A stretch of DNA of 64,000 bases from Mobula hypostoma (taxonomy: Eukaryota): positions 11,966,001-12,030,000 of the forward strand of contig NC_086109.1 of NCBI RefSeq assembly GCF_963921235.1, written 5' to 3'. This document shows positions 4,154 through 56,350 of the stretch, piece by piece; the first letter of the stretch is position 1; every line of letters starts with the position of its first letter. The notes under the pieces were generated by a model, which was given only the letters and a program-made list of their open reading frames with translations, made no database searches and was not told the DNA's origin. The translations under genes and the position numbers were made by a program.

Positions 4154-4366
4154 CTATTTCGGCTTTGTGCATTGGGTTTGAAATTTGATATCTGTATAGG
4201 TTACATTGTCCCCATCAGTAACGGAGTGGACTGCGCTTGATTTCACTTTAAATTTCACATCTGCATACACAATACCATTTTCATTGGTAGTCGATTGGGC
4301 AACTTTATTGTTTCAAACATGGAGTAGATTTGTATAAGTGACATTTTCTTCCAACGTGGCCATTTC
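4154..4366 (-). CDS. Terminal cytoplasmic exon of an Ig-superfamily inhibitory receptor with three ITIMs; in-frame TGA at 4313-4315
   Basis: Acceptor ttttatttcag|GAA, phase 0. Translation EMATLEENVTYTNLLHV*NNKVAQSTTNENGIVYADVKFKVKSSAVHSVTDGDNVTYTDIKFQTQCTKPK*. ITIM-consensus motifs VTYTNL, IVYADV, VTYTDI. Confidence 0.85.
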
Positions 4367-5589
4367 CTGAAATAAAAAATAAATTCCATGATCTATTTTA
4401 TGACTGATGAATGTGAAGGGAGAGGGTGTGAAAGTTATTGGGAAGAAGGCAGGATAATGAGAAATGGAAAATAAATCAGCCATGATTGAAGGATGGAGCA
4501 GTCTTGATGGGCCAAATAGCCTAATTCTGCTCCTATGGTCTGAAGTTCTCGGATTATGGTCCTATGGTCATAAGTTCTTGGATTTTTTTTTTTTATTAGC
4601 CATCTTATGTGTATACCTTCAGTTCTACTCTCATCTGTAAGTGGCAACACCTTCCTTAGTCTTGCAGACATCTATCAGATCACCCTCGGTTTTCTCTCTT
4701 TAAATAAACCCTGATCAACTTGTAGAATATAATTTTCCATAATGTTTGATAACAGCTTATGGCTCAGTGGCAGGGATCCTTAGAGAGGACCCGCTACTAA
4801 ATGTACAACATTGGCATGTTGCTTTACAACACCAACACACTAAACTGGTCCTAGGTGTTTCACAGGGGTTTAGCAAGAGAAGAGGTTGAAAATGAACTTG
4901 GGAATTATTTTCACAAACTGCAATATCTTTAGGGTTTACAGTCAGAATGGTTTGTCGTAGGAGGTTAATTGATCACATGGGTGTAATTAGGTGGCTCGTG
5001 GGTCGGAAGGACCGGTTACGCTGCTGTATCTAGAACGAACAAAAGTTATGAGGATAGAATTGCAGGAGTTCATGGATTTGTGGGATTTGTCTAGTGTGTG
5101 GGTTTTGGGCAACTGAAGCTACTGACATTGGTGGTGGGATTCAGAGACTGGAAGATGCACAAGAGGAACACACAGTCCTCTGAGGGTACAGCTCTTGGAG
5201 AGAAAGTGATGCCCACAAGGGAAAATGTACGGCAGAGCAGAATCCTTTAACAATCTCCACCTTGCAGTTACCTTTGGGAAAGTGAAAGACAACTGATGAA
5301 ATTGAGAAAATAATTGAAGCTCTTTGATAATATTGACTAATTATTCAATTAGTAAAATGTTAAATCAATTGGGATGCTAATTAAGGTAATTATACACAAG
5401 CATTCCAAAATCTGTGGAAAATATCACAAAAAAGATCGTTGATAACAGAGCCAAGAGACAATAGACTATTCATACTGGTGTCAGGATTGAGGGGTAGCGT
5501 GAGAAAGTGGGTGGGTGAGGTCAGCACAGAACAGATATTTACTTATTTAGGGATACAGCATGGAAACAGGCCATTCTGGCCCAACAAGT

Positions 5590-5780
5590 CCACATCTCCT
5601 AGTTAAACTCATGTGACCAAATTAACATACTAACCTCTTTGGAATGTGGGAGGAACCTGGAGCATCTAGAGGAGACCCACATTGTCACAGGAAAAGCATA
5701 CAAGTTCTTTACAGACAACGGCGGAATTAAACCCAGTTAACTGGCTTTTTAATAGCATTCTGCTAACCGCTATGCTGCCG
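5590..5780 (-). mobile_element. HE1-like tRNA-derived SINE fragment
   Basis: Contains ctttggaatgtgggaggaacctggagca...gagacccac, the reverse complement of the SINE core seen repeatedly in this window. Confidence 0.6.
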
Positions 5781-6128
5781 TGCCTCCCCCAGTTTATTAT
5801 TCTGAATATACCTGCACTCATTTTTCTGATTTCACATCAGGGTTTGAGACTCAGAGGGAATGTAGAAAATGTAAACTGAAAAGTCATTGAACCCAAAGAC
5901 AGATTTACATAATTAGACATTCCATCAACCCAAAACTTTGACTGTACTTTTTTTCCATAGGTGCTACCTGGCCAGCTGAGTTCCTCCAGCATCTTGTGTG
6001 TGTTGCTTCGAAAGGACCAATCTCACTTTTCACCCTTCAGTAACAATAAAAAAAGATGTGGAGCCACTTTGAAGAATAGTTATGTAAGATATTATGGATA
6101 GACTTAAGGAAAAACTGGATTAAATTTT

Positions 6129-6415
6129 AAGGTATCCGTTAGTCTTGCGAGACCATGGATCTGCGCCTGGAAAGTCTTCACTCTCCAGGGTGCAGGCCTG
6201 GGCAAGTTTGTATGCTGCAAGGCTCCCCTCTCCATGCACTGATGTTGTCCAAGGGAAGGGCATTAGGACCCATACAGCTTGGCACCAGTGTTGTCACAGA
6301 GCAATGTGTGATTAAGTGCCTTGGTCAAGGACACAACACGTTGCCTCGGCTGGCGCTCGGACTCACGACCTTCAGATCATTAGTTGAATGCCTTAACTAT
6401 TTGGCCATGTGCCCA
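6129..6415 (-). mobile_element. tRNA-derived SINE
   Basis: Minus strand begins with a tRNA-like head (tggccaaatagttaaggcattcaactaatgatctgaaggtcgtgagtccgagc) followed by gtgtccttgaccaaggcacttaatc. The head is shared with 8026-8315. Confidence 0.6.
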
Positions 6416-6615
6416 AAAGCTGGATAAACCCAAGAGAAAGGGACATATAACTGGAAGGATATGCTGATGGGATTCAATGAGAGGAGTGTTCAGAGGTTTC
6501 TGTAACATATTAATACCAGACTGGATTAGTGGGGTTGGATGATCTGTAAACTCCCATGTGATCCAATTGTTAAATATTCTGAAACATTCAGACAATTTAT
6601 ACTTCATGTCCATAC

Positions 6616-6662
6616 CTGGGTATTATTATTGCCTTCTCTGTGAGATGTGTTGGGCTTCCATT
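6616..6662 (-). CDS. First cytoplasmic exon of the inhibitory receptor (47 nt, phase 1 to 0)
   Basis: Acceptor gtattttccag|AA, donor CAG|gtatgg. Reads (E)WKPNTSHREGNNNTQ. The phase fits both the TM exon upstream and the ITIM exon downstream. Confidence 0.75.
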
Positions 6663-6724
6663 CTGGAAAATACAATATTATTGAAAAAAATTTCATGTCA
6701 AGAACAGACAAACATTTATTGATC

Positions 6725-7010
6725 GATTGATACAGCAGAGTCAGCCCCAGCAGCCCTTTGAGTTTCGCCACCCCAGCAACCCCTGACAAACCAGATTAGC
6801 CCTATCCTAATCACGGGATAATTTCCATTGATCAATTCACCTACCTGGTATGTCTTTGGACTGTGGGATGAAACTGGAGGACCCAGAGTGTATCCATGCA
6901 TCCCACAGGGAGGACATACATAGACTCCTTTCAGAATGGCTCTGGAATTGAACTGCAAACTCCAGAATGCCCCAAGCTGCAATAGCTTTGCGTGAACCGC
7001 TAGGTTACCA
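6725..7010 (-). mobile_element. HE1-like SINE
   Basis: Contains gtctttggactgtgggatgaaactggaggacccagag...ctccagaatgccccaagctg, as in the copy at 9390-9607. Confidence 0.6.
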
Positions 7011-8007
7011 TGGCCCCCATACTGAATTTCAGAACCACGGGAACCCCAGCTGCAACACAGTAATGATTCTCCACACAGAGCAAACCTCTGCTCTGGTTAC
7101 CACTCAATATTTAGAAAGGATCACATTGTTTTATCCACCACCTTCTCTGCCACTGAAAACTGATGTTTTCCATCTTTGTACATTGTAATGAAGAGTTTGG
7201 ATTTGAAATTTTGTTTTTCTTTTTATTGCTACAAATTCTGTCTGATTAACCGTGCATTTTCTGTGCGTGTTTTTAGGTAATATTTCTCCTTCACAATATG
7301 ATGCAGAAGATTTCCTTACAATGTTCACACTGCCCCATGAAAATCTCACTGATCTCTCCAGGGCTCTGTGGCAGATTGCCCCTCAGGAAGAAGGAACAAA
7401 CTGTCCAAAATAAAAATCACCTCGTTTTCCAACTGACCATTAAAACCATCTTTTGAATTCAACACTGAGCTCAACAATTTCATACAGAGTCCATGTGTCC
7501 CATCCTCAATGAACAGTTTTGATGACCTTGGACAATTAGTGAAAGTTATGTCCCCCCGATATGGTTTGCTATTTTATTTTTAGCAACTAGAAATCACTGC
7601 TTACTTGTAAGTTTACAGCTGTTGTTCATTCCTTACTACTGTGTTTCTAAGCAATTGACCTTCGACATCAGGTCAGCCATTTTATAATTGCTTGATTATT
7701 TACTCATTCATTTGTCAGAAATACTTTGTTAGGACTCAAAGGGACTTTAATCAATATTTGAATCCATCTCTCATGAGAACACCTCGTTTTGCTCAGCTCC
7801 TGGCTTACTGTAATGAGTTGGTGAACAATAAAATTGCCTTAAAACTACAACTACACCTGGACTGGAGTTTACCTACCTGCCTACCTTAAGAAAACAGGGA
7901 AAACTCTTGAGTGAGGGCAGAATAGTGGATGTTGAATTGTGAACAGATTTCATTTCCCAAAGCATGGTTCCAATTTTTTTTTTATTTTTATTTTTTATTA
8001 ATAGCAG

Positions 8008-8410
8008 TTAACCATAAAAAGAGAAGTCAAAAGTTAAAGTCTGTCCCGAGCCTTATAGGTGCCTGTGCTGGTTTCCATCACGTGAAGCAACTGAAAGTAC
8101 AAGACTCCCCCCCCCCCCCCCCCACCGGATAGGATGCCAGTGTATCGCGAGGTTAACCCCCAGCATTTTGCCGGTACCCGTTTTCAGCTGGGTGGACTGG
8201 AGCATTGTGTGGTTAAGTGCCTTGCTCAAGGACACACACACTGTGCCTCGGCTGGGGCTCAAACTCACGACTTTCAGATCGCTAGTCCAACACTTTAACC
8301 ACTTGGCCATACGCCACCATAAAAAGAGAAATGTCAAAGAAAATCAAGAGCAGTACACTCTGCTACTGATGAGGATAATGTCACTGATGCAGAAATCAAA
8401 TTTCAAAGCC
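8008..8410 (+). pseudogene. Inverted, degenerate copy of the ITIM exon, interrupted by a SINE
   Basis: 8339-8408 reads RKSRAVHSATDEDNVTDAEIKFQ, about 56/70 nt identical to VKSSAVHSVTDGDNVTYTDIKFQ of exon 4154-4366 but on the opposite strand. The ITIM Tyr is GAT (Asp). A T-rich tract and cag acceptor lie at 7975-8007. Confidence 0.7.
8026..8315 (-). mobile_element. tRNA-derived SINE (V-SINE-like core) with 15-bp TSD
   Basis: TSD accataaaaagagaa at 8011-8025 and 8316-8330. tRNA-like head at the right end; core ccacccagctgaaaacgggtaccggc. Confidence 0.8.
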
Positions 8411-8779
8411 CGCCCATCTTTAAATCTTCATTTATCCTATTACCACCCACCTTTTGCCTCACACATCATCTTTCCTGACATTTTTTCTGTCTTGTACTCC
8501 CTCAGAAACCCTCTCTTTTGTGCTTCCTTCTCTACTTCCTCTGCAGCTCAAGACTTGTTATCGCTCACTTTCCAGTTCTGATGTAAGGTCATTGCCTTGA
8601 AGGATCAGCTGTTCCTTTTTCCACAGCTGCCATCTGACATGCTGAGCGTTCCTAGCACTTTTCTGCCAATATCTCGGGTATTTATCATTTAGGGAATTTC
8701 TCTTTGGAAAAGAATGCACTCCTTCTGTTCAGATCTTTGCAACAAATAAGTACTAGGAGATAATACTACGCTGAAAGTA

Positions 8780-8910
8780 NNNNNNNNNNNNNNNNNNNNN
8801 NNNNNNNNNNNNNNNNNNNNNNNNNNNNNNNNNNNNNNNNNNNNNNNNNNNNNNNNNNNNNNNNNNNNNNNNNNNNNNNNNNNNNNNNNNNNNNNNNNNN
8901 NNNNNNNNNN
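8780..8910. other. Assembly gap (131 N)
   Basis: Run of N. It lies inside the intron between the TM exon and the first cytoplasmic exon. Confidence 1.
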
Positions 8911-9141
8911 CTCGGGGAGAAGTCGAATTATTAGTTGTTATAGTATTCAACTAGTGAGTTATATTCCATCAGCCAGTGAGTTAGAGGCTGCAGCGGCTTT
9001 ATTTTCCAGTGATCAACCCCATTTCCCCATCTGATAATAACACATAGATAACCACTGTACTCGTTGTTCTCTTCACTGGTTTACGAAGTCTATTTAAGGG
9101 ACACCAGATTATTTATTTATTGATTTATGTAGTGGTACATC

Positions 9142-9347
9142 GAGCCACTTAACCATACACTGCTCCAGTCCGCCCAGCTGAAAATGGGTACCGGCAAATG
9201 CTGGGGGTTAACCTCGCGATAGACTAGCATCCTATTCGGGGTGTTGGCGGGGGGGGGTGTCTCATACTCAGTCGCTTCACGCCACGGAAACTGGCATAAG
9301 CACCGGCCTGATGGGCCACTAGGCTCGCGACAGTCTTTAACTTTAAC
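9142..9347 (+). mobile_element. 5'-truncated copy of the same SINE family as 8026-8315
   Basis: Contains cacttaaccatacactgctccagtccgcccagctgaaaatgggtaccggcaaatgctggggg...ctttaactttaac. Confidence 0.7.
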
Positions 9348-9389
9348 ATCATGGAGTAAGCCCTTCCATCCCTTTGGTCCACGCTGACG

Positions 9390-9607
9390 CAGCAACTCCG
9401 ACAAACCTGATTAACATGGGACAATTTACAATGACTAACTAACATACTGTACTCGGTGTGTCTTTGGACTGTGGGAGGAAACTGGTATACCCCGGAAAAA
9501 CCCACACGTTCAATGGGGAGCATGTGGAGGCTCCTTACAGACTGCGTCAGAATTGAACTCTGAACTCCAAAATGCCCCGAGCTGTAATATCGTCACGCTA
9601 ACCGCTA
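9390..9607 (-). mobile_element. HE1-like SINE
   Basis: Contains gtgtctttggactgtgggaggaaactgg...cacgctaaccgctac. Confidence 0.6.
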
Positions 9608-9640
9608 CATAAAAAATAATTGAAGGGAAAAGGAACCTAC

Positions 9641-9732
9641 CCCTATTCTTTCTCCTCAGGTAGCAAAGTAGACAAACGACAAGTAGTACGAGTAGAATCC
9701 CAATGACACCGAGCACAATTATGTAAGTGTGT
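9641..9732 (-). CDS. Transmembrane exon without a charged residue (92 nt, phase 2 to 1)
   Basis: Acceptor ttctttaccacag|A, donor G|gtaggt. Reads HTYIIVLGVIGILLVLLVVCLLCYLRRKNR: about 22 hydrophobic residues followed by a basic stop-transfer cluster. Confidence 0.88.
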
Positions 9733-10461
9733 CTGTGGTAAAGAATAGGAAAAGGTCAGTCCTGGTTCACCACTTATTCTTTGCCATTTGTAAAGTCTGA
9801 CATTTACACAGCATTTTTCATGAGCTCAGGATGTCTGCAGCTCAGAAAATGAACATTAGACACTTTTGACAGTGTGGGAAATTGCAGGAGCCAATCTGCT
9901 CACAGCAAGGTCTCACAAGCAGAAATGAGATCATGACCAATGATAGTGATGTTGGTTAGTGTGTAACTATTGTCCAGGCCATTTGGGAACCCTCACATGT
10001 TCTTTTACAAACATTTCATTGGAACTGTTACATTAAAGGATTGATTGGTGGTTTCTTCTCTGACAGACAGCACTGCTGACCATGTAGCCAAACCTCTTCT
10101 TTACACGGCCCCCATGGTTTTCTTTGTTTCATGGCTGTCTGGACTCTTGTTTGGCTTGGACGGGTCAGGCTGAGGAGCCTGATGTTCTAATTTTCAACAA
10201 TGACTTTCTAACTCAATACACAAGCTTCAACAGCTTTGCATAAATTATTAAATATTGAGGGTAAGAAAACTATCTTTGTTCTGAGGCTTGACCCATGTCT
10301 AGGAAAATCAGGAATACTCAGTTTCCAATACAGGATTTCATTGAAGTTAATCATGTCAAATGTGCTTAACACCGGTTAAAGAGAAACCAATTTCCCTCCC
10401 GACTGTTCTATTTGGAAGTAGTAGCAGTGAAACCACCTGTAGAGAGAACATTATACTTTAC

Positions 10462-10540
10462 ATTTTATCTGATGCAGATTCTTTCCCTTGTGCAGTTGTC
10501 ATGGATTCAGTCACAGTATTTTCACAGAAATGAATTGGCC
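10462..10540 (-). CDS. Ser/Thr-rich stalk exon (79 nt, phase 1 to 2)
   Basis: Acceptor ttttcttttaacag|GG, donor AT|gtaaag. Reads PIHFCENTVTESMTTAQGKESASDK. The phase joins a phase-1 Ig exon to the phase-2 TM exon. Confidence 0.8.
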
Positions 10541-11261
10541 CTGTTAAAAGAAAATAAAACTTAATATCATCTGCTTTGCACTTGCAAGAACAAGGGAGCA
10601 CAATTGATCGACCCATAGGCACTTGATAATGGTGGAGAAAGGTAATCTGGTACTCAATACACTTTTAATGATGAAAGATGAGATTTGTCACACATGCATC
10701 AGATCATACAGTCAAATGAATCGTTTGCAACAGCAACCAACAGAATATGTACTGGGGGCAGCCTGCAAGTGTTTCATGCTTCCAGAACCAAAATAGCTTG
10801 CCTACGAATTACTTATCCGAACCTGTGTGTCTCTGAAATGTGGGAGGAAACTGGAGCACCTGGAGGGTGCCCACACAGGGAGTATGTACAAGAAACTTGC
10901 AAACAGTGGTGGGAATTGGACCCTGATTACTGATGGCTGCAGGTGTAATGATGTTATGCTAATTGTGTACCCAATTACATTTACAGACAGTTTACATTCT
11001 TTCCCATATTCAGGCAATGGTGGTATGGAGATGCGGCTGGGGAAGTTAAAGGCCTGAGGAAAATATAATCCTATTTAAGTGTGTGTAATCTAAAGGGAAA
11101 GGCCTAGCCAGGGAGCTGGCCTCTGCCAGCATGGGAAGATCTACTTTTGGGGCCCCATCACCCTCTGCAAATGTGGTCAAAGCTGTACTTGAGTATTCAG
11201 TGAGATACTTTTTATCCAACAGGATAATGCAGGAGTTTTCCTCAATAAAAAGGCAAGCTTT

Positions 11262-11395
11262 GTTAGCACTCAACGCGCTGGAGGAACTCAGCAGGTCGGG
11301 CAGCATCAGTGGAAAAGATCGGTCGACGTTTCAGGCCAGAACCCTTCGTCCAGGAGTGTTGCTTTGACCCCAGCATCTGCAGATTATTTTGTGTT
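11262..11395 (+). repeat. Penelope-derived short interspersed repeat
   Basis: Contains gctggaggaactcagcaggtcgggcagcatc...cagcatctgcagattattttgtgtt. Related copies occur near 40.9 kb, 49.9 kb and 58.7 kb, the last attached to a GIY-YIG remnant. Confidence 0.6.
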
Positions 11396-11440
11396 CAAGC
11401 TTTGTTAAAGCAATATACAGAAAACCAATACACCATGGCT

Positions 11441-11620
11441 GCCATGGTAGCGTAGTGGTTAGAGTGACACTATTACAGCTCAGGGCTTACTGGAGTTTGG
11501 AGTTCAGTTCCAGCAGTCTCTGTATGTCCTCACCATGGTGTGGGTTTTCTCCGGGTCCTCCAGTTTCCTCCCACAGTCCATGTAGCAGGTAAGTTAATTG
11601 GTCCCTGTAATTTGTTCCAT
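11441..11620 (+). mobile_element. HE1-like SINE
   Basis: Contains ggtagcgtagtggttagagtgacactattacagctcaggg...cctccagtttcctcccacagtcca. Confidence 0.6.
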
Positions 11621-11625
11621 GATGA

Positions 11626-14140
11626 GAACATAAAAAACATAGAACATAGAAATTTACAGCACATTACAGGCCCTTCGGCCCACAATGTTGTGCCGACCAT
11701 GTAACCTACTCCAGAAACTGCCTAGAATTTCCCTAGCACATAGCCCCCTATTTTTCTAAGCTCCACGTACCTATTCAGGAGTCCTTTAAAAGACCCTGTC
11801 ATATCTGCCTCAACCACGGTCACCGGCAGCACATTCCATGCACTCACCACTCTTTGCATAAAAAAAACTTCCCTCTGACATCTTCTCTGTACCTACTTCC
11901 AAGCACCTTAAAACTGTGTCCTCTCATTTAGCCATTTCAGCCTTGGGAAAAAAGCCTCTGACTATCTGCATGATCAATGCCTCTCATCATTTTATATACC
12001 TCTATAAGGTCACCATTCATCCTCCATCATCTACAGAGAGAAGTCCATGTTCACTCAACCTATTCTCATAAGGCATGCTCCCCAATCCAGGCAACATCCT
12101 TGTAAATTTTCTCTGCACCCTTTTTATGGTTTCCACATCCTTCCTGTAGTGAGGTGACCAGAACTGAGCACAGTACTCCAAGTGGGGTCAGACCAGGGTC
12201 CTATATAGCTGTAACATTACTTCTCAGCTCTTGAACTCAATCCTACAGTTGATGAAGGCCAATACACCTTCCTAACCACACTGTCAACCTGCGCAGCAGC
12301 TTTGAGTGTCCTATGGACTCAGACTCCAAGATCCCTCTGATCCCCCACACTTCCAAGAGTCTTACCATTAATATTATATTCTGCCATCATATTTGACCTT
12401 CCAAAATGAATCATCTTTCACTTATCTGGGTTGAACTCCATCTGCCACATCTCATCCCAGATTTCCATCCAATCAATGTCCCGCTGTGATCTCTGACAGC
12501 TCTCCACACTATCCACAACACCCAAACTTTGTGTCATCAAGAAATTTACTAACCCATACCCTCTCTTTCCCATCCAGATAATTTATAAAAAAAAAATCAC
12601 GAAGAGAAGGGTTCCCAGAACAGATCCCTGAGGCACAACACTGGTCACCAATCTCCATGCAGAATACTATCTGTCTACAACCATTCTTTGCCTTCTGTGA
12701 TCAAGCCAGTTCTGGATCCACAAAGCAATTTCCCCTTGGATCCCATGCCTCCTTAATTTCTCAATAAGCCTTGCATGGGGTACTTTATCAAATGCCTTGC
12801 TGAAATCCATATACACTACATCTACAGCTCTACCTTCAACAATGTGTTTTATCACAACCTCAAAAATTTCAATCAGGCTCATAAGGCACTACCGGCCTTT
12901 GACAAAATGATGCTTAATATTCCTGATCATACTATGCCTCTCCAAATGTTCATAAATCCTGCCTCTGAGGATCTTCTCCATCAACTATCAACCACTGAAG
13001 CAAGACTCACTGGTCTATAATTTCCTGGACTATCTCTACACCTTTTCTTAAATATGGGAACAACATCTTCAGATCTCCAATCCTCTGGAACCTCTCCCAT
13101 CCTCATTGATGATGCAAAGATCATTGCCAGAGGCTTAACAATCTCCTCCCTTGCCTCCCACAGTAGCCTGGGATATATCTCGTCTAGTCCTGGTGACTTA
13201 TCCAACCTGATGCTTCCCAAAAGATCCTGAACATCCTCTTTCTTAATGTCTATAGGCCCAAGTGTTTCAGTCCCCTGTAAGAAATCTCTACAATCACCAA
13301 GATCCTTTTCTGTAGTGAATACTGAAGCGAAGTATTTATTAAGTACCTCCGCTGTCTCCTCCGGTTCCATACACACTTTTCCACTGTCACACTTGATTGG
13401 TCCCATTCTCCCACGTCTTATCCTTTTGCTCTTCACATTTGTAGAATGCCTTGGGGCTTTTCTTAATCCTGCTCACCAAGGCCTTCTCATATATCCTTCT
13501 GGCTCTCTTAATTTCATTCTTAAGTTCCTTCCTGCTAGCATTGTAATTTTCTCGATGTCTATCATTACCGATTGTAACCCTTGGTTCAGCTTGCGGCTTT
13601 ATCTTTTTTGAACCTTTCGTAAGCTTTACATTTCTTCTTAGCTAGATTTTCAACAGCCTTTCTACACCATGGTTCCTAACATCTTTTCCCTGTCTCATTG
13701 GAACATACTTAGGCAGAACTCCACACAAATATCCTCGAACGTTTGCCACATTTCTTCTGTGCATTTCCCTGAGAACATCTGCTCCCAATTTACACTTCCA
13801 AGTTCTTGCCTGATAGCCCCATATTTTCCCTTACTCCAATTAAATGCTTTCATAGCTTATCTGCTCCTATCCCTTTCCAATGCTATGGTAAAGGAGATAG
13901 AATTGTGATCACTATTTCTAAAATGCTCTCCATTGAGAGACCTGACACCCGATCAGGTTTATTTCCCAATAACAGATCAAGTACAGACTCTTCTTGTAGG
14001 CTTCTCTACATATTGTGTCAGGAAACCTTCCTGAACACACCTAACAAACTCAACCCTATCTAAACCCGTTGCCCACAGGAGTTGCCAATTAATATTGGGA
14101 AAATTAAAATCTCCCATCACGACAACCCTGTTATTTTGGT
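11626..14140 (-). mobile_element. Degenerate CR1 LINE
   Basis: Minus-strand ORF fragments 12667-12882 (YMDFSKAFDKVPH) and 12981-13436 (DKSPGLD, NYRPVSL). (ctatgtt)-type tail at the left end. Confidence 0.9.
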
Positions 14141-14272
14141 TCCGGCAAACCTGTTATTAAATCTGGGGATTGCCGGGTGGCAGGGTTCAAAGGGCTGGAA
14201 GGTTCTATTCCACGCTGTATCTGAATGAATAAGTAAATAAATAAATAGACCTATATATATCTTCAAATATTA

Positions 14273-14900
14273 GGGAGGAGAAGATGGCGACGCGATGCAG
14301 CGCGCAGTGGCCACTTCGGTGTATATCTGTTATCTGTCAAGTAGGGTGCCGTGCACAATCCTGATTTGATGGAGACAGACACGAGAGCATGGAAGAACAT
14401 CTGCTAAAACTTCTGAAATGCCTGTTTCGCTGCTGTGTGATCCAAAATCTCCGGAGGCGAAGGCCCCGAGTCCTCGGCTTTGCTTGTTGCTCGGCGGCTG
14501 GGGCGGGGTGAGAGATGGTGCTTGGTGTCAGAGGGCTGGTCGGAGGCTCGAAGTTTTTGGATGGACTTAGAGTCGGCTGCTGTCGGGTGCTTCCAATGCA
14601 TCGGCAAGTTTGTGGCGCTTGGAGGTTCATGGCAGGGAGAGTTTCTCCCTTCTACCGTCTGCGTGAGATGATGGGGCTACCGGGATTTGAGACTTTTTTT
14701 TTAAACCGTGCCCATGGTCTGTTCTTAGGGTACAGTATTGCTTTGCACTGTTGTAACTAAGTTATAATTATGTGGTTTTGTCAGTTTTAGTCTTGGTTTG
14801 TCCTGTGTTTCTGTGATATCTTTCTGGAGGAACATTATCTTTTCTTAATGCATGCATTTCTAAATGACAATAAATGAGGACTGAGTGTCCTCATAATCTA
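14273..14900 (+). repeat. Unclassified ~0.6-kb interspersed repeat; second copy at 61027-61650 on the minus strand
   Basis: Both copies start ggaggagaagatggc and end aatgcatgcatt...aaat(g/a)a(g/a)g(a/g)ggact...gtgtc(c/t)tcataatct. Confidence 0.6.
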
Positions 14901-15113
14901 AAAAAAATTGCCTGGATTGGAGTGTATTAGCTATGGTCATAAGTTGGACAGACTTGGATTGTTTTTGCTACAGCATATGAAGCTGAGGAAAGATCAGATA
15001 GAAGTTTATAAAGTTATAGAAGTCAGATTGGGAAAATAGTCAGAATTCTGTTCCCAGGGTGAAATACCAAAATAATAGTGAGCATAATTTTAAGGTGAAA
15101 AGGTTAAAGGATA

Positions 15114-15930
15114 CAGTGGAATGCAAAAGTTTGGGCACTCCAGTCAAAATTTCTGTTACTGTGAATAGTTCAGTGAGTAGAAGATGAACTGATCTCCAAA
15201 AGTCATAAATTAAAGATAAAACATTCTTTTCAACATCTTAAGTAAGATTAATGTATTATTTTGTTTTGTACAATTTTAGAGTGAAGGGAAGGAGCACCAT
15301 GCAGAAGTTTGGGCACCCCAAGAGATTTGAGCTCTCAAATAACTTTTACCAAGGTCTCAGACCTTAATTAGCTTATTAGGGCTTTGGCTTGTCAGAGTCA
15401 TCGTTAGGAAAAGCCAGGTGATGCAAATTTCAAAGCTTTATAAATACCCTGACTCCTCAAACCTTGTCCCGACAATCAGCAGCCATGGGATCCTCTAAGC
15501 AGCAGCCTAGCACTCTGAAAATTAAAATAATTGATGCCCACAAAGCAGGAGAAGGCTATAAGAAGATAGCAAAGTGCTTTCAGGTAGCTGTTTCCTCAGC
15601 TTGTAATGTAATTAAGAAATGGCAGTTAACAGGAACGGTGGAGGTCAATTTGAGGTCTGGAAGACCAAGAAAATTTTCTGAGAGAACTGCTCATAGGATT
15701 GCTAGAAAGTCAAATCTAAACCCCTGTTTGACTGCAAAAGACCTTCAGGAAGATTTAGCAGACTCTGGATCGGTAGTGCATTATTCTACTGTGCAGCAAC
15801 ACCTGCACAAATATGACCTTCATGGAAGAGTCATCAGAAGAAAACCTTTCCTGTGTCCTCACCACAAAATTCAGCATCAGAAGTTTTCAAAGGAACATCT
15901 AAACATGCCTGATGCATTTTGGAAACAAAG
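15114..15930 (+). mobile_element. Tc1/mariner transposon, left half only (TIR plus transposase N-terminus), truncated at the start of a CR1
   Basis: TA|cagtggaatgcaaaagtttgggcac terminus with an internal direct repeat near 15298. ORF from ATG 15485, MGSSKQ...GEGYKKIAK...RSGRPRK...RKKP-like (paired HTH domains). The DDE domain is absent. Confidence 0.9.
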
Positions 15931-18900
15931 AGAAATAGAATGAAGGGTGTAGAGGTAGTAAGGTAGAAGGGCTAAAGTGCGTGTACTTCAATGCAAGAAG
16001 CATCAGGAACAAAGGTGATGAACTGAGAGCTTGGATACATAGGTGGAATTATGATGTCGTGGCCATTACAGAGACTTGGCTGGCACCAGGGCAGGGATGG
16101 ATTCTCAATATTCCTGGATTTCAGTGCTTTAAAAAGGGATAGAGAGGGATGAAAAAGGGGAGGAGGGGTGGCATTACTGGTCAGGGATACTATTACAGCT
16201 ACAGAAAGGGTGGGTAATGTAGCAGGATCCTCTTTTGAGTCAATATGGGTGGAAGTCAGGAACAGGAAGGGAGCAGTTACTCTATTGGGGGTATTCTATA
16301 GGCCCCCTGGTAGCAGCAGAGATACCGAGGAACAGACTGGGAGGCAGATTTTGGAAAGGTGCAAAAATAACAGGGTTGTTATCATGGGTAACTTTAATTT
16401 CCCTATTATTGATTGGCACCTGATTAGTTCCAATGGTTTAGACGGGACAGAATTTGTTAAGTGTCCAGGACTGATTCTGTCATAGTATCGACAGGCCGAC
16501 TAGGGAGAATGCCATACTATATCTAGTATTAGGTAACGAACCAGGTCCGGTCACAGATCTCTCAGTGGGTGTGCATCTGGGGGACAATGACCACCACTCC
16601 CTGGCCTTTAGCATTATCATGGAAAAGGAGAGAGGACAGGAAAATTTTTAATTGGGGAAGGGCACATTATGAGGCTATAAGACTAGAAATTGCGGGTGTG
16701 AATTGGGATGGCTTTTGCAGGGAAATGTACTATGGACATGTGGTCGATGTTTAGGGATCTCTTGCAGGATGTTAGGGATAAATTTGTCCTGGTGAGGAAG
16801 ATAAAGAATGGTAGGGTGAAGGAACCATGGGTGACAAGTGAGGGGGAGAATCTAGTCAGGTGGAAGGCGGCAGCATATATGAGGTTTAGGAAGCAAGGAG
16901 CAGATGGGTCTATTTAAGAATATAGGGTAGCAAGAAAGGAGCTTAAGCGGCTGAGGAGAGCAAGAAGGGGGCATGAGAAGGCCTTGGCGAGTAGGGTAAA
17001 GGAAAACCCCAAGGCATTCTTCAATTATGTGAAGAAAAAAGGATGACAGGAGTGAAGGTAGGACCGATTAGAGATAAAGGTGGGAAGATGTGCCTGGAGG
17101 CTGTAGAAGTGAGTGGAGTCCTCAATGAATACTTCTTTTCAGTATTCACCAATGAGAGGGAACTTGATGACGGTGAAGACAATATGAGTGAGGTTAATGT
17201 TCTGGACCATGTTATTATTAAGGGAGAGGTGGTGTTGGAGTTATTAAAATACATTAGGATGGATAAGTTCCCAGGGCCTGACAGAATATTCCCCAGGCTG
17301 GTCCACGAGATGAGGGAAGAGGTTGCTGAGCATCTGGCTAGGATCTTTATGTCCTCGTTGTCCACAGGAATGGTACCGGAGGATTGGAGGGAGGTGAATG
17401 TTGTCCCCTTGTTCAAAAAAGGTCATAGGGATAGTCCAGGTAATTATAGACCAGTGAGCCTTACGTCTGTGGTGGGAAAGCTGTCAGAAAAGATTCTTAG
17501 AGATAGGATCTCTGGGCATTTAGAGAATCATGGTCTGATCAGGGACAGTCAGCATGGCTTTGTGAAGGGCAGATCATGTCTAACAAGCCTGATAGAGTTC
17601 TTTGAGGAGGCGACCAGCCATATAAATGAGGGTAGTGCAGTGGATGTGATCTACATGGATTTTAGTAAGGCATTTGACAAGGTTCCACACTGTAGGCTTA
17701 TTTAGAAAGTCAGAAGGCATGGGATCCAGGGAAGTTTGGCCAGGTGGATTCAGAATTGGCTTGCCTGCAGAAGGCAGAGGGTGGTGGAGGGAGTACATTC
17801 AGATTGGAGGATTGTGACTAGTGGTGTCCCACAAGAATCTGTTCCGGGACCTCTACTTTTCGTGATTTTTATTAATGACCTGGATGTGGGGGTAGAAGGG
17901 TGGGTTGGCAAGTTTGCAGACGACACAAAGGTTGGTGGTGTTGTGGATAGTGTAGAGGATTGTTGAAGATTGCAGAGAGACATTGATAGGATGCAGAAGT
18001 GGTCTGAGAAGTGGCAGATAGAGTTCAACCCAGAGAAGTGTGAGATGATACACTTTGGAAGGACGAACTCCAAGGCAGAGTACAAAGTAAATGGCAGGAT
18101 ACTTGGAAGAGTGGAAGAGCAGAGGGATCTGGGTGTACATGTCCACAGATCTCTGAAAGTTGCTCCACAGGTAAATAGGGTAGTTAAAAAAGCTTATGGA
18201 GTGTTAGCTTTCATAAGTCAAGGGATAGAGTTTAAGAGTCATGACGTAATGATGCAGCTCTATAAAACTCTGGTTAGGCCACACTTGGAGTACTGTGTCG
18301 AGTTCTGGTTGCCTCACTATAGAAGGGATGTGGAAGTATTGGAAAGGGAACAGAGGAGATTGACCTGGATGCTGCTTGGTTTAGAGTGTATGCATTATGA
18401 TCAGAGATTAAAAGAGCATGTCACAGTGGGGGCACTGGTAATGGACCCAAATGCAAGACACAGACACTGAAGTACAAGGAACAGGACTTGACAGGATTCA
18501 GGCCAGGAGCAGGGACAAGAACACAGACTTGGGCTAGGGAAAGCAGGACCAGGATTAGAAACCATGGACTAGGAAGCAACACTTCGACTCCAAGCCTGAA
18601 ACTGGACAAGGACCCAGAACCTGGGTCTTGCCTCTGGCTTGGTCCCCAGAACCAGGCAAGGACATGACATGGCTGGGGTCTAGAAGCCTGAGCTTGGAGA
18701 CAAGACGAGGCTTGGACTCCAAGCCCGAGACTGAACAGGGACCCAGAACCTAGGTCTTGCCTCGGGCTCAGACTCCAGAACCAGGCAAGGACATGACATG
18801 GCTGCAGGCTGGGGTCTTGGGTCTAGAGCTTGGAGGCTAGGGATACTCAAGGCTTGGGTTTTCGGGGCTCGGCTCAGGACCTTTGTCTTGAAATGCGGAG

Positions 18901-20131
18901 GCTGATAACTTGGAGGCTGGAGCTGAGAGACCAACTGGGAACTGAACATCAACATAGAGCCAGGACTTGTCCTTCAAAAAGCCAGGACTCATCATTAGCA
19001 CGACACCAACATGAGACAGGACAGTACATAGACAGATCTGGGACTTATACTTTGATAAACCAGGACTCAACTCCTCTGCACCAAGGTGGGACAGGTCCAA
19101 CTGTTAGGTAACAGCAGAACAGCCAGACTTATCCAACAGAGGCAAAGTCAAGACATGTCCCCTCACAGGGCAATGGCAAAACAGCCTGACTTACCCCACA
19201 GAGGCAAGGACAAGACAAGACATGACATGACCCCCCCCCCATCCCCCCACACAGCAACAGCAAAATAGCCTGACTTACTCCACAGAGGCAAGGACAAGGA
19301 GACAAACACTAAAGAATGACAGACAGTTCCATCTCTGCTCCGGGGTAGCTCCAAGTCACAGTTACAGCCAGCAACCTCTGCTGGCTACAGAAACAGCCAG
19401 ATCCCTACCTAGCTCAGAGTAGCTGGCAGCCACTCAGCTGGCCCAGGAAACAGCCAAATCCATACTGCAAAGACTACTCCAACAAGTGGTAACAAGGCTC
19501 CATGAAGCAGTGGTCCTCCAACCAGGTCAGGAGATCACAAATGGTTTCACTAGCCTTCCATCAGCAGGTTGCTCCAAGGGGGACTGACAAGACAAACCAG
19601 CAGCCCACACTCAAACCCCAAGGCTACTTATATTCCAACCCTCAAGATGGGAATCAGGTGCCTGTGATTAACTCACCCAAACGAGGGACAGCTGGAAGAC
19701 CCGGAGTTCTGAGTGCACGGACTGGACCATGACAGAGCTAGGGCTTTACTCTCTGGAGAGAAGGAGGATGAGAGGAGACATGACAGAGGTATACAAGATA
19801 TTAAGAGGAATAGATAGAGTGGACAGCCAGCGCCTCTTCCCCAGGGCACTACTGCTCAATACAAGAGGACATGGCTTTAAATTAAGGGGTGGGAAGTTCA
19901 AGGGGGATATTAGAGGAAGGTTTTTCACTCAGAGAGTGGTTGGTGCGTGGAATGCACTGCCTGAGTCAGTGGTGGAGGCAGATACACTTCTTAAATTTAA
20001 GAGACTACTAGACAGGTATATGGAGGAATTTAAGGTGGGGGTTATATGGGAGGCAGGGTTTAAGGGTTGGCACAACATTGTGGGCCGAAAGGCCTGTACT
20101 GTGCTGTACTGTTCTATGTTCTATGTTCTAT
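15931..20131 (+). mobile_element. CR1 LINE with nearly complete but disrupted ORF2, interrupted by a 1.3-kb insertion
   Basis: Endonuclease motifs (YFNARSI, AITETW, GVFYRPP), RT motifs (NYRPVSL, QHGF, FADD) and 3' domain. (ttctatg)3 tail ending near 20131. Confidence 0.93.
18419..19734. mobile_element. 1316-bp solo-LTR-like insertion inside CR1 ORF2
   Basis: Termini TGTCA...TGACA with flanks gagca/gagct (near-perfect 5-bp TSD). CR1 sequence resumes exactly after it. Internal direct repeats at about 18617/18744 and 19175/19259. No coding homology recognised. Confidence 0.7.
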
Positions 20132-20238
20132 GAGAATCCCCCAAACAAGAATATCAGTGCTTCCCTGACTCTTCCCAGGGAAAATATGAATCAGACATTT
20201 CTATCAAAACATAAAATGAATCAATGAGAAAAACCTAC

Positions 20239-20477
20239 CGTCAGATACTTGTAAATACACATCAAACACTTGATGTTTGCCAGATGTTGTAATGCCACAT
20301 CTGTAATGCCCTGTACCATTAGAGTCAAGATTCTCCATAGTAACAGTAAATATTCCCTGAGATGTGATATCTCTGATTGTCATTCTTCCACACTGCATAG
20401 TGCATAGTGACAATCGATTGTGGTCGCTCTTCCCACAACTCCTCTTACTTTATCTTCTGTCCATAAAGCACCTGAAA
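20239..20477 (-). pseudogene. Ig V-domain pseudo-exon (module A) with a net 82-nt internal deletion
   Basis: Splice sites intact. Reads VSGALWTEDKVRGVVGRATTIDCHYA, then frameshifts at a tgcatag duplication (20394-20407). The C-C'' strands are missing compared with the 24-kb V exon. Confidence 0.9.
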
Positions 20478-22295
20478 CTGAGAGAGAAGTTTCTCAGAAA
20501 ATGGACAGGTAAAACCAAATTTACACAAGTGGATTGAAGATCCTATGTTGTTTAGTGTTAGTTCCTGTACGCAGTTGTAAAGGATAATGAAAATCATTGT
20601 TACTCTGCATCTGACTTAGAAAAAAAATACAAAAGATAAAGAACACAATGATAATAAAAAAGATGTTTTATGAAAAGCTGTTGCTATGTTTTAAACAATC
20701 TGACACACTGTCGATTGGTGTGATTAAATTCCACAAAGGCAACAGCATCATCCCTCATCACGTGCTCAGAGCTCTTCACAAGTAATGATTTTTATTTGAT
20801 TGGAGTCATCATTGTCACTGCCCACTAATGTCTCAGTGTACTTCCACATTTCTGAGTCAATAGATTACTGATCCAGTCCCATTCCAGGCAGGTGAGCATA
20901 AGGTCAGTAATGGGTAACTTACTGGAGGCAATTGTCTGAGACAGAATCTACCTTGATTTTACAAATGCAAGATCTGATTTGGGATGGTGAACATGATTTT
21001 GTGCATGGGAAATTGTCTTGCAAAAAATACGACTGAGTTTTATTGAAGAGATGACCAAAGGGATTGATGAGGGCAAGGCAGTCATGTTTGGCACATGAAA
21101 TTTAGCAAGTGCTGAGACAAGATCTCACATAGGAGACTGATCTGTAATACGGTAGGCTTTGAACTTTGAACTAGGAAAGTGGCCAATGGAACAGCTGATG
21201 GAATTGAACTCAGGTAGTGTGAGGCCATGCATGTTGGGGGATTAAACAAGGGCACAACTTACACAGTGAAGAACCAGGTGCGCAACTACATAGATCCCTG
21301 AAAATGGCAACACAGGTGGACAAAATGGGGAACAAGGCAAATGCCATGCTTGCCTTCATTGGATGGAGCATTAAGTACAGCTGGGATGGCATGTTACAGC
21401 TATAAAGGACATTGATAAGATCTCATCTGGACTACTCTGTGCAGTTCCAGAGGAAGAATGTGATTAATTAGAGAAGATACAGAAAACATTCCCAAAGATG
21501 CTGCTGGGACTGAAGGGTTTGGGTTATCAATAGGCTGGGACTGTTTTCCCTGAAGTGACTGCAGCTGAGGGGTGACCTTATAGAGGTTTCAAATAAAAAG
21601 GGCCAAAGTATTGTGGATAATCATAGTCTTTATCCCAGAGTAGGGGAGTAGAAAACTAGAGGGCCTAGACTGATAGTCAGAGTGGAAAGTCCCATTTTTG
21701 TCATAATGCTTGTGCCTTCCTCAGTCTCAAATTATGCAAAATACTTATTAGTTTGGTTCTCCATTTCTTTGTCCCTCATTACAACCTCTCCAGCATTATT
21801 ATCCAGTGGTCTGATATCCACCTTTGCTTCTGTTTTACTCTTCATGCATCTGAAACTCTTTTGGAATCCTCATATTTTTGGCTAGTTTCCCTTTATATTT
21901 CATCTTTTCTCTCCTTATAATATTTTTTGGTGCCTTCTGTTGGTTTTCAAAAGTTTCCAATTCTCTAAATTCCCAATAATTTTTGCTATATTTTATGTCC
22001 TTCCTTTTGTTTTTATGAATGTCACTGTCTCACAACTCAACACCCATTCCAGCATCTTCAATGCAGAAACCAGAAGTATAAAGGGAATGTTTTCAATTTG
22101 TCAGGATGTGCAAGTCCAACTATGTTTGAGATGCTCCATGTTTTCCAGGAGGAAGAACTACCCTATTTTGGCTGCAATGTGTAGCTTCTATAAATGGAAA
22201 GAAATTCCTTACCCTCACTAGAAGCATAAGAACAGCAGTAACAGAGGAACAAAAAAGAATATTGAAATGTATCCACCCTTGAAATTAGAAATTAC

Positions 22296-22616
22296 TGGTG
22301 CCATTGATTTCTGTCACATAACTGCAGATCTCTCCATTGCTGAAGATTGTCATTTTAACTGTTCCACTGATTTCTTCTCCAAATTTATTCGAGGCACTGC
22401 AGTAATATTGATGGTACTGGTGGTCCAAGGATTGACAATGTAGAGCCAGTTCATTGGTATTTGTGATCTGTGGATGCCCAGATGAGGTTTGTTCATACCA
22501 TGTGTACTGAATGGGAAGGGATCCCTGGAGAGACTCATAGGAAACTGACCCTGAGCCCCCGAGACGTGAGACATTTGCTGGTGACAGATATCGAAGCACA
22601 GGAACAGACACAGGTT
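22296..22616 (-). CDS. Second, C2/FcR-like Ig domain exon (module B), open frame, 321 nt, phase 1 to 1
   Basis: Acceptor tttttcacag|AA, donor A|gtaatt. Reads EPVSVPVLRYLSPANVSRLGGSGSVSYESLQGSLPIQYTWYEQ...LHCQSL...QYYCSASN...EICSYVTEINGT. The B-strand Cys position holds Tyr. Confidence 0.85.
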
Positions 22617-24069
22617 CTGTGAAAAAGAATCAGTGAACATCAGAAAATCAAAAACACTAAAGATTTCATCAGATCTGTATCTCAACCAAGACCCACCAGT
22701 TTAGAATTTCAGAAGCTCATCTACCTCTCTATATCATTGTATTCTCACAGCTGCCTGAGTTTCCATGTCTGCCAGTATTCCAGAACTCAGCAGGTCTCCA
22801 GATCAGGACAGCAGTGATTAAACTGAGTACGTGTCAGAGTGAACATCAGAATTACAATCTCTCTCAGCAGCAAGGAGACACCTAACAGTATGACTTTTTA
22901 ATGGAAGCATTTGTGAGTGTCCTGGAAAACTCTCCATAATGTGAAAGCAGGAAATTGTCAGATACAGACAAAATGGTGACTTTAGGGAGAGAGTATAATT
23001 GTGATTGTTTCAGTGACCTGCAGCAGGATGGGAACCCATTCATTTTGTTATCTGTATGAAGCCAACAAGGAATCATGCGAGACTGGAGAACCAGAAAGAC
23101 CATAGACCATAAGACCATCAGACATAGGAGCAGAATGAGGCCATTCAGTCCATCGAATCTTCTCCACCATTCAAACACAGCAGATTTATTACCCTTCTTA
23201 ATAGTGAGCATATTTTTAAGGTGATAGGGGGAAAGTTTAAAGGACTTCGTGAGACAAGATTCTTTACACCCAGGGTGGTGACTGCAGGGTGAAAACAATC
23301 AGATCAGTTAGGGAAAGGGATATTATAACAATATTTAAGAGGCTTTTGGATGAGGACATGAAAAGGGAGGGAATGGAGGGATATGGACCATATGCAGGAA
23401 GGTGGAATTAGCTTAGAATGATATCATGGTCAGTGAACACATGATAGGCCAAAGAGTCTATTCTTGTGCTGGACTGGGTCCCAGGTTCTCTCAAAATCCA
23501 TTGCTCTATTTCCCAGGAATGGGCCAGATGGAGAATCTGGCTACTGTGAAGTGAGTGGTAAGTGGGTGCTGTGGGGTGGAGTAGCGGAACACATCGACAG
23601 GGACAGCGAGAAAGAGCATGGGGTATGGATGGAGTGACTGATCTATGAAGTGTGGATGGGAAGTGGGATAGCCTATGAGAACTGAACACAGTTTGTTTTG
23701 ATCTTGGATCTGATTCCCTTTTTATGATTTTCAAAGTGTTTAGACTATGAGTTACTCTTGTTTCTCATCGGCCTGTTAGTGTTATTAGTACTTGTCTGAA
23801 TGCAATCCCCTGAGAAGTCGACATTTCAAACTGTGTTAGTGTAGGAAAATGTGCTGAGCCTCCCACTGGAGACCGGTGTCCCATCGGTGGGTTAGACCCC
23901 AACCTGGGTGAGAGCAATGTGAGTGGGGTTTCCCGAATCCTGCACACTCACCGAAGGGCTCTGCATTGCAACAGAGCTTCAAAATACTGGTGCTCCCCTG
24001 ACTCTTCCAGGAGAAAATACTGATCAGACATTTTGGTGGAGACGTCAAGTCAATCAATGAGAAACCTAC

Positions 24070-24387
24070 CATCAGATACTTGTAAATACACATCAAACAC
24101 TGGATGATTGCCAGATGTAACTCCACATCTGTAAAGTCCTGTATCATTAGAGACAAGATTCTCCATAGTAACAGTAAATATTCCCTGGGATGTGTTATCT
24201 CTGATTGTCATTCTTTCATACTGCTCATTTGTCCCATTTGTATTCACTGACGATGTGCATTGGTGACCCCACATGCGGCACAAATACTTTGTGTGTGAAC
24301 GGTACATTGGTGCATAGTGACAATCGATTGTGATCGCTCTTCCCACAACTCCTCTTACTTTATCTTCTGCCCATAAAGCACCTGAAA
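24070..24387 (-). CDS. CD300/pIgR/TREM-like Ig V-domain exon (module B), intact
   Basis: Acceptor ctccctcag|TT (an alternative in-frame acceptor lies 6 nt downstream, 24381), donor G|gtaggt. Reads VSGALWAEDKVRGVVGRAITIDCHYAPMYRSHTKYLCRMWGHQCTSSVNT...RMTIRDNTSQGIFTVTMENLVSNDTGLYRCGVT...VYLQVSD. Has the canonical B-F Cys pair plus the C-C' Cys pair typical of this family. Confidence 0.92.
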
Positions 24388-26088
24388 CTGAGGGAGAAAA
24401 TCTTCAGAAAATGGACAGGTAAAAGTCAAATTTACACAAGCAGATTCAAGATTCTAGATTGTTTCATGTTGATTGCTGTACGCCGTTGTAAAGGATAATG
24501 AAATAATTGTTACTCTGTATCTGATGCAGAAAAACAACACAAAAGTAAAAGGACACAATCATAATAAAAAAGATGTTTTATTTAAAGTTGTTGCTGTGTT
24601 CTAAAGAATCTGCCCACACTGACAACTGGTATAATTGAATTCCACATTGACTGGGAAGACAACAGCATCGTCCCTCATCATATGCTCACAGCTCTTCACA
24701 AGTAATGATTTTTATTTGATTGGAGTCATCATTGTCACTGCCCACTAATGTCTCAGTGTGTTTCCACATTTCTGAGTCAATACATTACTGATCCAGTCCC
24801 ATTCCAGGCAGGTGAGCATAAGGTCAGTAATGGGTAACTTACTGGAGGCAATTGTGTGAGACAGAATCTACCTTGATTTTACAAAGCCAAGATCTGATTT
24901 AGGATGGTGAACATGATTTTGTGCATGGGAAATTGTCTTTCAAACAATACGACTGAGTTTTATTGAAGAGATGACCAAAGGGATTGATGAAGACAGGGCA
25001 GTAGCATTTGTCACATGGAGTTTAGCAAGTACTGAGACAAGATCTCACATTGTAGACTGATCTGTAATGTGATATCACATGGTTAACCAGCTGGATAGAT
25101 ACTGAATTAACTTCGTGGAAGGAGTCAGATTGTGGTCGTGGAGTGTTGGTTTTCTGACAACATCAGATTTTATCACCAGTGATGTGTCATCGGGATCAAT
25201 GCTGCTGTTAGTTAACCACTGTCATTTCTTACCTATATTGATAATTTGGAAGGATAGTTCATCCACCTCCCTCTCTTCTTGCTACTACCATCAGGCAGAA
25301 GGTGCAGGAGTCCTGGGTCCCATGTCGTCGGCTGCTGGATTGGCTTCGCTCGGCTCACTGCTGAACTGACTCCTCAACTGTGATCTCACTTTCGGGGACT
25401 CTGCAGTTCACGTTCTATGTGTTATTTGTTAACATATTTTTATAATTTGCACAAAGCCCCCTCTTTTGCTCATTGGATGTTCGTGAATCTTTTTTGCCTG
25501 CGGCTTATCATGGATTCTATTGTGTTACTTTGTTTTGCGGACATCTGCAAGGAAATGAATCTGCAGGTTGTTTATGGAACACACACTTTGAACATTGGAC
25601 AAGGAAAGTAGCCAATGCAACAGCTGATGGAATGGAACTCAGACAGAGAGAAGTGATGCATTTTAGGAGATTAAACAAGAACACAACTTAGACAGTAGAG
25701 AACTAGGTGTGCAACTACATTGGTCCCTGTAAATGGCAACACAGGTGGACAAAGTAGTGAACAAGGCATATGACATGGTTGCCTTCATTAGATTGGGTAT
25801 TAAGACAAGACCTCACCTCAACTACTCTGTGTCGTTCCGGAGAATGGTATGATTAAATTAGAGAGTACAGGAAACATTCACAAAGATGCTGCTGGATCTG
25901 GAGGATTTGGGTTATGGATAAGCTGAGACTGTTTTTCCTGAAGTGAGTGTAGCTGAGTGGTGACCTTATTGAGGTTTACAAATTAAGAAGGACAAATGTA
26001 TGGTGGATAATCACGGTATTTATCCCAGGGTAGGGACGTCAAAAATTAGAGAACCTGGATGGAAAGTGAGAGGCACAAGTCTTGGAGG

Positions 26089-34096: not shown

Positions 34097-34409
34097 TGGT
34101 GCTGTTGATTTCTGTCACGTAAGTGCAGATCTCTCCATTTTTGAAGACTGTCACATTAACCATTGCACTGAATCTTGTTCCAAGCCAATTTGAGGCACTG
34201 CAGTAATATTGATGGTGCTGCCGGTTGAGGGATTGACAATGTAGAGCCAGTTCATTGGTACCTGAGATCTTTGGATGCTCAGATGAGGTTTGTTCATACC
34301 ATGTGTACTGAATGGGAAGGGATCCCTGGAGAGACTCAGAGGAAACTGACACCGAGACCCCGAGACGTGAGACATTTGCTGGTGACAGATATCGAAGCAC
34401 AGGAACAGA
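34097..34409 (-). pseudogene. C2-like Ig pseudo-exon (module C); acceptor and first codons deleted
   Basis: Reads SVPVLRYLSPANVSRLGVSVSVSSESLQGSLPIQYTWYEQ...YYCSASN...EICTYVTEINST|gtaagt. About 13 nt (cacagaacctgtg) present at 22.6 kb are missing. The upstream cag would give a stop in phase 1. Confidence 0.85.
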
Positions 34410-56281: not shown

Positions 56282-56350
56282 CTGAGTAAAGGGGAAGAGA
56301 TACAGAACTGATGAGACAAAACGATATGGCTTTGAGTTTGAAATATTTAC

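Follow-up and report, generated by a model that had tools for sequence, protein, structure and literature searches.

The stretch analysed here, 64,000 nucleotides of Mobula hypostoma contig NC_086109.1 (positions 11,966,001 to 12,030,000, hereafter the window), carries on its minus strand a locus that its sequence assigns to the modular domain immune-type receptor (MDIR) family of elasmobranchs, as a copy of the inhibitory type. We regard it as a degenerating copy, either a pseudogene or a gene becoming one, and consider this likelier than a working receptor, with a probability of roughly 0.58. The gene most likely spans 45.93 to 4.15 kb of the window (about 42 kb). Within it, the tail is cut by an in-frame stop codon after the first of three immunoreceptor tyrosine-based inhibitory motifs (ITIMs), the surviving C2 domain lacks a core cysteine, and several immunoglobulin (Ig) cassette exons are dead.

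Part of this locus had been described in an earlier note, made from the letters of the DNA alone, as a six-exon gene for a V-C2-stalk-transmembrane receptor with a three-ITIM tail. The six exons are genuine, far beyond chance: a polypyrimidine-AG acceptor and a GT donor were found at every junction claimed, and joining the exons reproduced the phases 1-1, 1-1, 1-2, 2-1, 1-0 and 0. They lie in transposable element-rich vertebrate DNA of about 40-45% G+C, and in the order of transcription they are as follows.

24070 to 24387, minus strand: V_C exon (the V exon of the earlier note), 318 nt; intact and open, with both disulfides; internal V type of the family.
22296 to 22616, minus strand: C2_C exon (its C2 exon), 321 nt; open and FCRL-like, with Tyr in place of the B-strand Cys.
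10462 to 10540, minus strand: stalk exon (RPIHFCENTVTES...), 79 nt; phase 1-2.
9641 to 9732, minus strand: transmembrane (TM) exon, 92 nt; uncharged, with an RRKNR stop-transfer signal; phase 2-1.
6616 to 6662, minus strand: cytoplasmic exon 1 (cyt1), 47 nt; phase 1-0.
4154 to 4366, minus strand: cytoplasmic exon 2 (cyt2), 213 nt; ITIM 1 VTYTNL, TGA, ITIM 2 IVYADV, ITIM 3 VTYTDI, TAG.

The domain identities proposed for these exons also held. V_C matches the Pfam V-set profile (E = 1.5e-11) and, among PDB structures, CD300LF (1.3e-14) and domain 1 of pIgR (1.6e-9), all five pIgR domains being matched; both cysteines of its extra C-C' pair align to those of pIgR domain 1 and CD300LF in the PDB comparison, as expected of a V domain of the CD300/pIgR type. 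C2_C is FcR-like, aligning to the repeated C2 domains of FCRL5 (PDB 9loc) with the pattern PVSxPVL...GSLPI.Y...YYC in common. The stalk exon aligns with the stalks of the predicted proteins P0004, P0005, P0206, P0208 and P0244, and translation across the joined frame bears out an uncharged TM.

The tail is where the description of an intact receptor fails. Three [IV]xYxx[ILV] motifs are indeed present in one frame, but an in-frame TGA at 4315-4313 stands three codons past the first (VTYTNL-LHV-stop), so that only one of the three ITIMs is encoded; ITIM 2 and ITIM 3 follow behind the stop with the frame unchanged. Where the TGA stands, Arg is found in all six aligned relatives (skate MDIR2 and five others) and Gln in another four ray models. 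The surrounding letters, GTT-TGA-AAC, would agree with mutation of CGA to TGA at a CpG, as we infer. The final TAG of cyt2 falls 16 codons short of the end of the Hemitrygon relative P0004. A second lesion that contradicts an intact receptor lies in C2_C, where the B-strand Cys position is occupied by Tyr (TAT, 22539-22537). The same position is Cys in 179 of the 180 family C2 domains among the fetched proteins, and every contig that covers the site in four public sequencing runs reads TGT. We read the missing B-F disulfide as damage to a family member, not as a mark of non-membership.

Assignment to the MDIR family comes from searches with the individual exons and from alignment of the joined model. 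A search with the C2_C exon among 1.84 billion proteins returned 81 at E<=1e-10, the best of which were predicted ray and shark proteins. A second search, seeded with the skate-like two-domain protein P0029, returned 110 relatives, from Hemitrygon, Hypanus, Mobula, Pristis, Amblyraja, Leucoraja and Rhinoraja, from many sharks and from the chimaera Callorhinchus. These are labeled 'polymeric immunoglobulin receptor-like', 'Fc receptor-like protein 5', 'CMRF35-like molecule' or 'CXADR-like', and the same search also gave the UniRef entries 'Modular domain immune-type receptor 2, 3 and 5' of clearnose skate. The exons match these three skate receptors, and the suggestion that the gene recalls skate MDIR thus named the correct class. 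Against the skate MDIRs P0169, P0159 and P0173, the three parts of the model scored as follows.

V_C: identity 56-62%, E 1e-36 to 1e-41.
C2_C: identity 52-58%, E 1e-29 to 1e-37.
Stalk-TM-tail: identity 35-38%, E 1e-22 to 1e-27.

PMC3031540 presents the MDIRs as multigene families in skate and zebrafish that comprise both activating and inhibitory receptors, and it cites Cannon et al. 2006 (Immunogenetics 58:362) for the family. The combination of V, C2 and ITIM tail, which had drawn attention in the earlier note, is by sequence comparison not a new design: skate MDIR2 (P0169, 416 aa) has it, in the order leader, pIgR/CD300-type V, C2, Ser/Thr stalk with Cys, uncharged TM and a tail that bears tyrosine motifs. 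Aligned with MDIR2, the window model is colinear across all exon junctions, at identities of 56% for V_C, 52% for C2_C and 35% for the tail. Unlike the window, MDIR2 retains the C2 Cys, has Arg at the TGA site and has a longer stalk and tail, and its V is of the N-terminal type whereas V_C is of the internal type.

The gene extends well beyond the span 4154-24387 to which it had been confined. The earlier note found no leader exon; one is present outside that span, and upstream of V_C there are further cassette exons. They are listed here together with the dead V exon between C2_C and the stalk, which the note had correctly recognized:

45892 to 45931, minus strand: leader exon (MLWTLILLTDFLP); ATG, 13 codons plus 1 nt, GTGAGT donor; ends in phase 1.
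45076 to 45396, minus strand: V_A exon, N-terminal V type; open, AG/GT, phase 1-1; second Cys of the extra pair replaced by Tyr.
43819 to 44139, minus strand: C2_A pseudo-exon; two in-frame stops, GC in place of the GT donor.
34097 to 34418, minus strand: C2_B pseudo-exon; acceptor removed by an 11-nt deletion, nearby cryptic AG out of phase; B-strand Cys replaced by Ser.
20239 to 20477, minus strand: dead V exon; tandem copy of V_C and its upstream flank, with an 82-nt internal deletion.

In a scan of the whole window the leader at 45931-45892 was the sole family-type match, with a score of 47 against 33 for the runner-up. This leader matches those of P0207 and P0012, is separated by 500 bp from the first V exon downstream and carries Thr-Asp where relatives carry Ile-Gly. 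V_A matches the Pfam V-set profile at 3.5e-12 and is 79-81% identical over its full length to the first V domains of ray proteins. V_C, by its position in relatives, belongs to the family's internal V subtype: of 49 domains of its type, 39 stand directly after a C2 and only 2 are N-terminal. In contigs from the public sequencing runs X1 and X2, a C2 exon is spliced onto 24387, and the V-to-C2 joint 24070/22616 is also present. Taken together, the single leader at 45.9 kb, the internal type of V_C and the C2-to-V_C joints indicate a gene larger than six exons.

It is therefore very improbable that the six exons form a self-contained, intact V-C2-stalk-TM-three-ITIM gene whose leader was merely missed near 24.4 kb. 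In favor of such a model, its exons, phases and domain assignments hold, and two-domain V-C2 MDIRs are known (skate MDIR2; Hemitrygon P0206 and P0208). Those two-domain relatives, however, use the N-terminal V type; the TGA precedes ITIMs 2 and 3; and no family-type leader was found between 24.4 and 34 kb, or near V_C, in a regional scan followed by the scan of the whole window.

Counting all cassettes, there are three copies of the V exon in the window and three of the C2 exon. The five cassette exons that have both splice boundaries are of phase 1-1 or derived from a phase 1-1 exon, the sixth, C2_B, being without an acceptor; the dead V exon, at 239 nt, has its frame broken. The V and C2 copies are products of segmental duplication in which the flanks were copied along with the cassettes. 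Only one set of stalk, TM and tail exons is present, and when further copies of them were sought in the window only an inverted 83-nt fragment at 8328-8410 was found. The order of exon types is V, C2, an assembly gap, C2, V, C2, V and then the stalk, which resembles the M. hypostoma proteins P0244 (V-C2-V-C2-V-C2-stalk) and P0243.

The closest sequences are P0244 (948 aa, 'pIgR-like') and P0194 (479 aa) of M. hypostoma, together with Hemitrygon akajei XP_072886821.1 (P0004, 597 aa). V_C shares 91.5% identity with P0194 (residues 229-334), and the stalk-TM-tail part is 75% identical to P0244 and 70% to P0004. In all three proteins V, C2, V and C2 alternate ahead of the same type of stalk, TM and three-ITIM tail, and the exon types of the window stand in that order. 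Unlike the window, they are intact, encode all three ITIMs and usually end in a membrane-proximal C2 subtype. This subtype, which precedes the stalk in most relatives, was not found in the window (seven queries, E up to 20).

Joining C2_C to the stalk across an 11.7-kb intron, as the earlier note had done, is matched by two H. akajei proteins, P0206 (376 aa) and P0208 (379 aa), each an 'uncharacterized protein'. In both, the same C2 subtype runs directly onto the stalk with an identical junction (...NGT-RPIHFCENTV...); they differ from the window in having the N-terminal V type, in keeping the C2 Cys and in having Gln at the stop position. In a tally of relatives, 26 domains of the C2_C subtype are followed by stalk and TM. 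We also considered the proposition that this subtype never joins the stalk directly; it is ruled out by Hemitrygon P0206, P0207 and P0208 and by these 26 joins.

Mammalian CD300 (CMRF35-like) molecules and pIgR domain 1 share the V-domain type of the locus, including the second disulfide, which is complete in V_C and lacks one extra-pair Cys in V_A. CD300 receptors, however, have one V and no C2, the lone V standing on a mucin-like stalk, whereas here a C2 exon lies between V and stalk. CD300A and CD300LF occur as paired ITIM and charged-TM forms. pIgR has V-type domains only and a long transcytosis tail, with sorting signals and no ITIMs, in contrast to the C2 exon and ITIM tail of the window. 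FCRL5 has repeated C2 domains like C2_C, but the FCRLs have C2-only ectodomains without a pIgR-type V, whereas the window encodes V-set domains of the pIgR/CD300 type and its C2 lacks the B-strand Cys. What is typical of MDIRs is present: a pIgR/CD300/TREM-like V with an extra Cys pair, V and C2 exons as modules within one gene, for which relatives show many combinations, and an uncharged TM followed by an ITIM tail, here with only ITIM 1 ahead of the TGA; the other form of MDIR pairs a charged TM with a short tail. The canonical B-F disulfide of MDIR C2 domains is the feature that is absent.

The case for decay is made by the tail TGA, the lost C2 Cys, the lost extra-pair Cys of V_A, the Thr-Asp in the leader and the three dead cassette exons. 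To these we add that C2_C reaches only 78% identity with its best-matching relative, compared with 91.5% for V_C. Ratios of nonsynonymous to synonymous substitution (dN/dS) between the window's whole paralogous exons are 0.55-1.25, which we list on the side of decay although they do not discriminate between the readings. Several points weigh against decay. All the exons needed for a protein of signal peptide, V, V, C2, stalk, TM and one ITIM are open and have good splice sites. Lying in the last exon, the stop would leave the transcript exempt from nonsense-mediated decay, and a single ITIM can be enough, as it is in FcgammaRIIB. The ITIMs behind the TGA are still perfect, which suggests that the stop is recent, polymorphic or a base-call error. 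Diversifying immune receptors also show dN/dS near 1, and Ig domains without a core disulfide can fold.

These points lend themselves to a different reading, possible though in our judgment doubtful, in which the gene is live and its dead cassettes are skipped as pseudo-exons. The product would be a truncated MDIR with signal peptide, V_A, V_C, a Cys-less C2, stalk, TM and a single membrane-proximal ITIM that is still inhibitory. Leader, V_A, V_C, C2_C, stalk, TM and tail can indeed be joined through canonical splice sites alone, and they then read open for 423 codons between the ATG at 45931 and the TGA. Since the Ig exons are all of phase 1-1, any subset of them stays in frame; relatives show varied domain combinations, including V-C2-V-stalk in P0194 and V-V-C2 in skate MDIR3; and V_C, at 91.5% identity, is well preserved. 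Two conserved cysteines are nevertheless gone, and the leader departs from the Ile-Gly of relatives.

Expression evidence also bears on a live gene. No contig with this copy's own variants was found in the four public runs compared, although spliced contigs exist for near relatives, and neither protein search returned an annotated protein encoded by the window; both observations count against it. The non-detection is in our view no sign of silence, as the runs seem to represent other copies or species. In searches of sequencing runs, no run held more than 24% of the words of the C2 exon, and runs labeled with the same species held almost none. Over 19900-25899, contigs of X1 and X2 are 96-98% identical to V_C and C2_C and show spliced C2-V-C2 joints; where the window has its Tyr codon they encode Cys, and at 24115 they carry 3 additional nt. 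These spliced contigs indicate that a closely related multi-cassette MDIR is transcribed in 'organism A'. That the locus itself is live, with birth and death of cassettes within one gene, and yields an unusual V-V-C2 receptor whose C2 lacks its disulfide and whose tail was recently cut back to one ITIM, is a claim we put forward only tentatively.

The assembly must be weighed as well. Its gaps, and the repeats and fragments that lie in the introns, are as follows.

8780 to 8910: assembly gap, within the TM-to-cyt1 intron.
36857 to 36985: assembly gap, approximately where the V exon of the second (middle) cassette is expected; absent from the earlier note.
8328 to 8410, plus strand: piece of the last tail exon, inverted and old (79.5% identity with 4174-4256), its ITIM decayed; 370 bp from the gap at 8780-8910.
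12017 to 19900: transposon fill of the 11.7-kb C2-to-stalk intron; open reading frames of endonuclease and reverse transcriptase from long interspersed nuclear elements (LINEs) and a Tc1/Sleeping-Beauty-type transposase fragment.

Within this last interval, a helix-turn-helix fragment of a Tc1/Sleeping-Beauty-type transposase (Pfam 2.4e-16), followed by LINE endonuclease and reverse transcriptase frames, occupies 15464-18470 on the plus strand, and a second set of LINE-like frames lies at 12017-13436 on the minus strand of the same intron.

We consider it unlikely that the 42-kb locus is a mosaic of tandem MDIR paralogues, mis-joined or collapsed at the two gaps, with exons that belong to different genes. 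The presence of two gaps within the locus, the proximity of the inverted tail-exon fragment to the first of them, and the highly repetitive nature of a family that is clustered on one chromosome per species would all be consistent with such an artefact. Yet TM, cyt1 and cyt2, which lie on either side of the first gap, have their best matches in the same relatives and stand in the correct order and strand; the inverted fragment, at its 79.5% identity, is old and no fresh duplicate; and the dead exons bear real lesions that a mis-join could not produce. The gap at 8780-8910 is intronic and so leaves the reading frame unaffected. The exons that flank it match adjoining residues of the same relatives with none missing (...CYLRRKNR / EWKPN...). 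The earlier note had named a mis-join here as a danger to its model: order and strand are supported by these consecutive exons, continuity being a matter that they do not prove.

If this MDIR copy is degenerating, its history may be proposed as follows. The gene would start with the leader at 45.93 kb and the first V at 45.4 kb, continue through duplicated phase 1-1 V and C2 cassettes and end with the stalk, TM and two tail exons between 10.5 and 4.1 kb. Two C2 cassettes and one V cassette would have died, the surviving C2 would have lost its core disulfide Cys, and the first V its second-disulfide Cys. In the tail, an Arg or Gln codon would have become TGA, removing two of the three ITIMs.

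For intact members of the family, a signalling scheme can be drawn from the ITIM motifs and from mammalian ITIM receptors. By this analogy, the pIgR/CD300-like V domains of an intact MDIR would bind ligand, Src-family kinases would phosphorylate the ITIM tyrosines, and recruitment of SHP-1, SHP-2 or SHIP would damp signals from activating relatives, which in turn would pair with signalling adaptors via Lys or Arg in the TM. A TM exon with Lys and Arg (FMIWKVGRWLLFALLVTCTISVTWFTRETK) is found at 56191-56286 on the minus strand, 84% identical to the activating-type TM of M. hypostoma P0006. The exon probably forms the 3' part of the next upstream gene, a neighboring activating MDIR, with Ig exons beyond 57 kb or off the window. 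Two short open reading frames on the minus strand, at 51447-51542 and 62550-62633, match the C-terminal 30 residues of RefSeq model P0006 at 62-64% identity; they are probably copies of a repeat into which that gene model reads, not receptor sequence.

RefSeq predicts the MDIR design in many sharks and rays, and the discovery value of this locus is accordingly small. Ray RefSeq models that carry misleading names (pIgR-like, FCRL5-like, CMRF35-like or CXADR-like) should be called MDIR, and the annotation of the present copy should warn that it is probably a pseudogene or a truncated allele. Should the locus instead prove to be live and truncated, it would amount to a natural experiment on how the strength of inhibition is tuned in the MDIR cluster. 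For the family, the locus illustrates how MDIR clusters evolve, as phase 1-1 V and C2 cassettes duplicate and decay.

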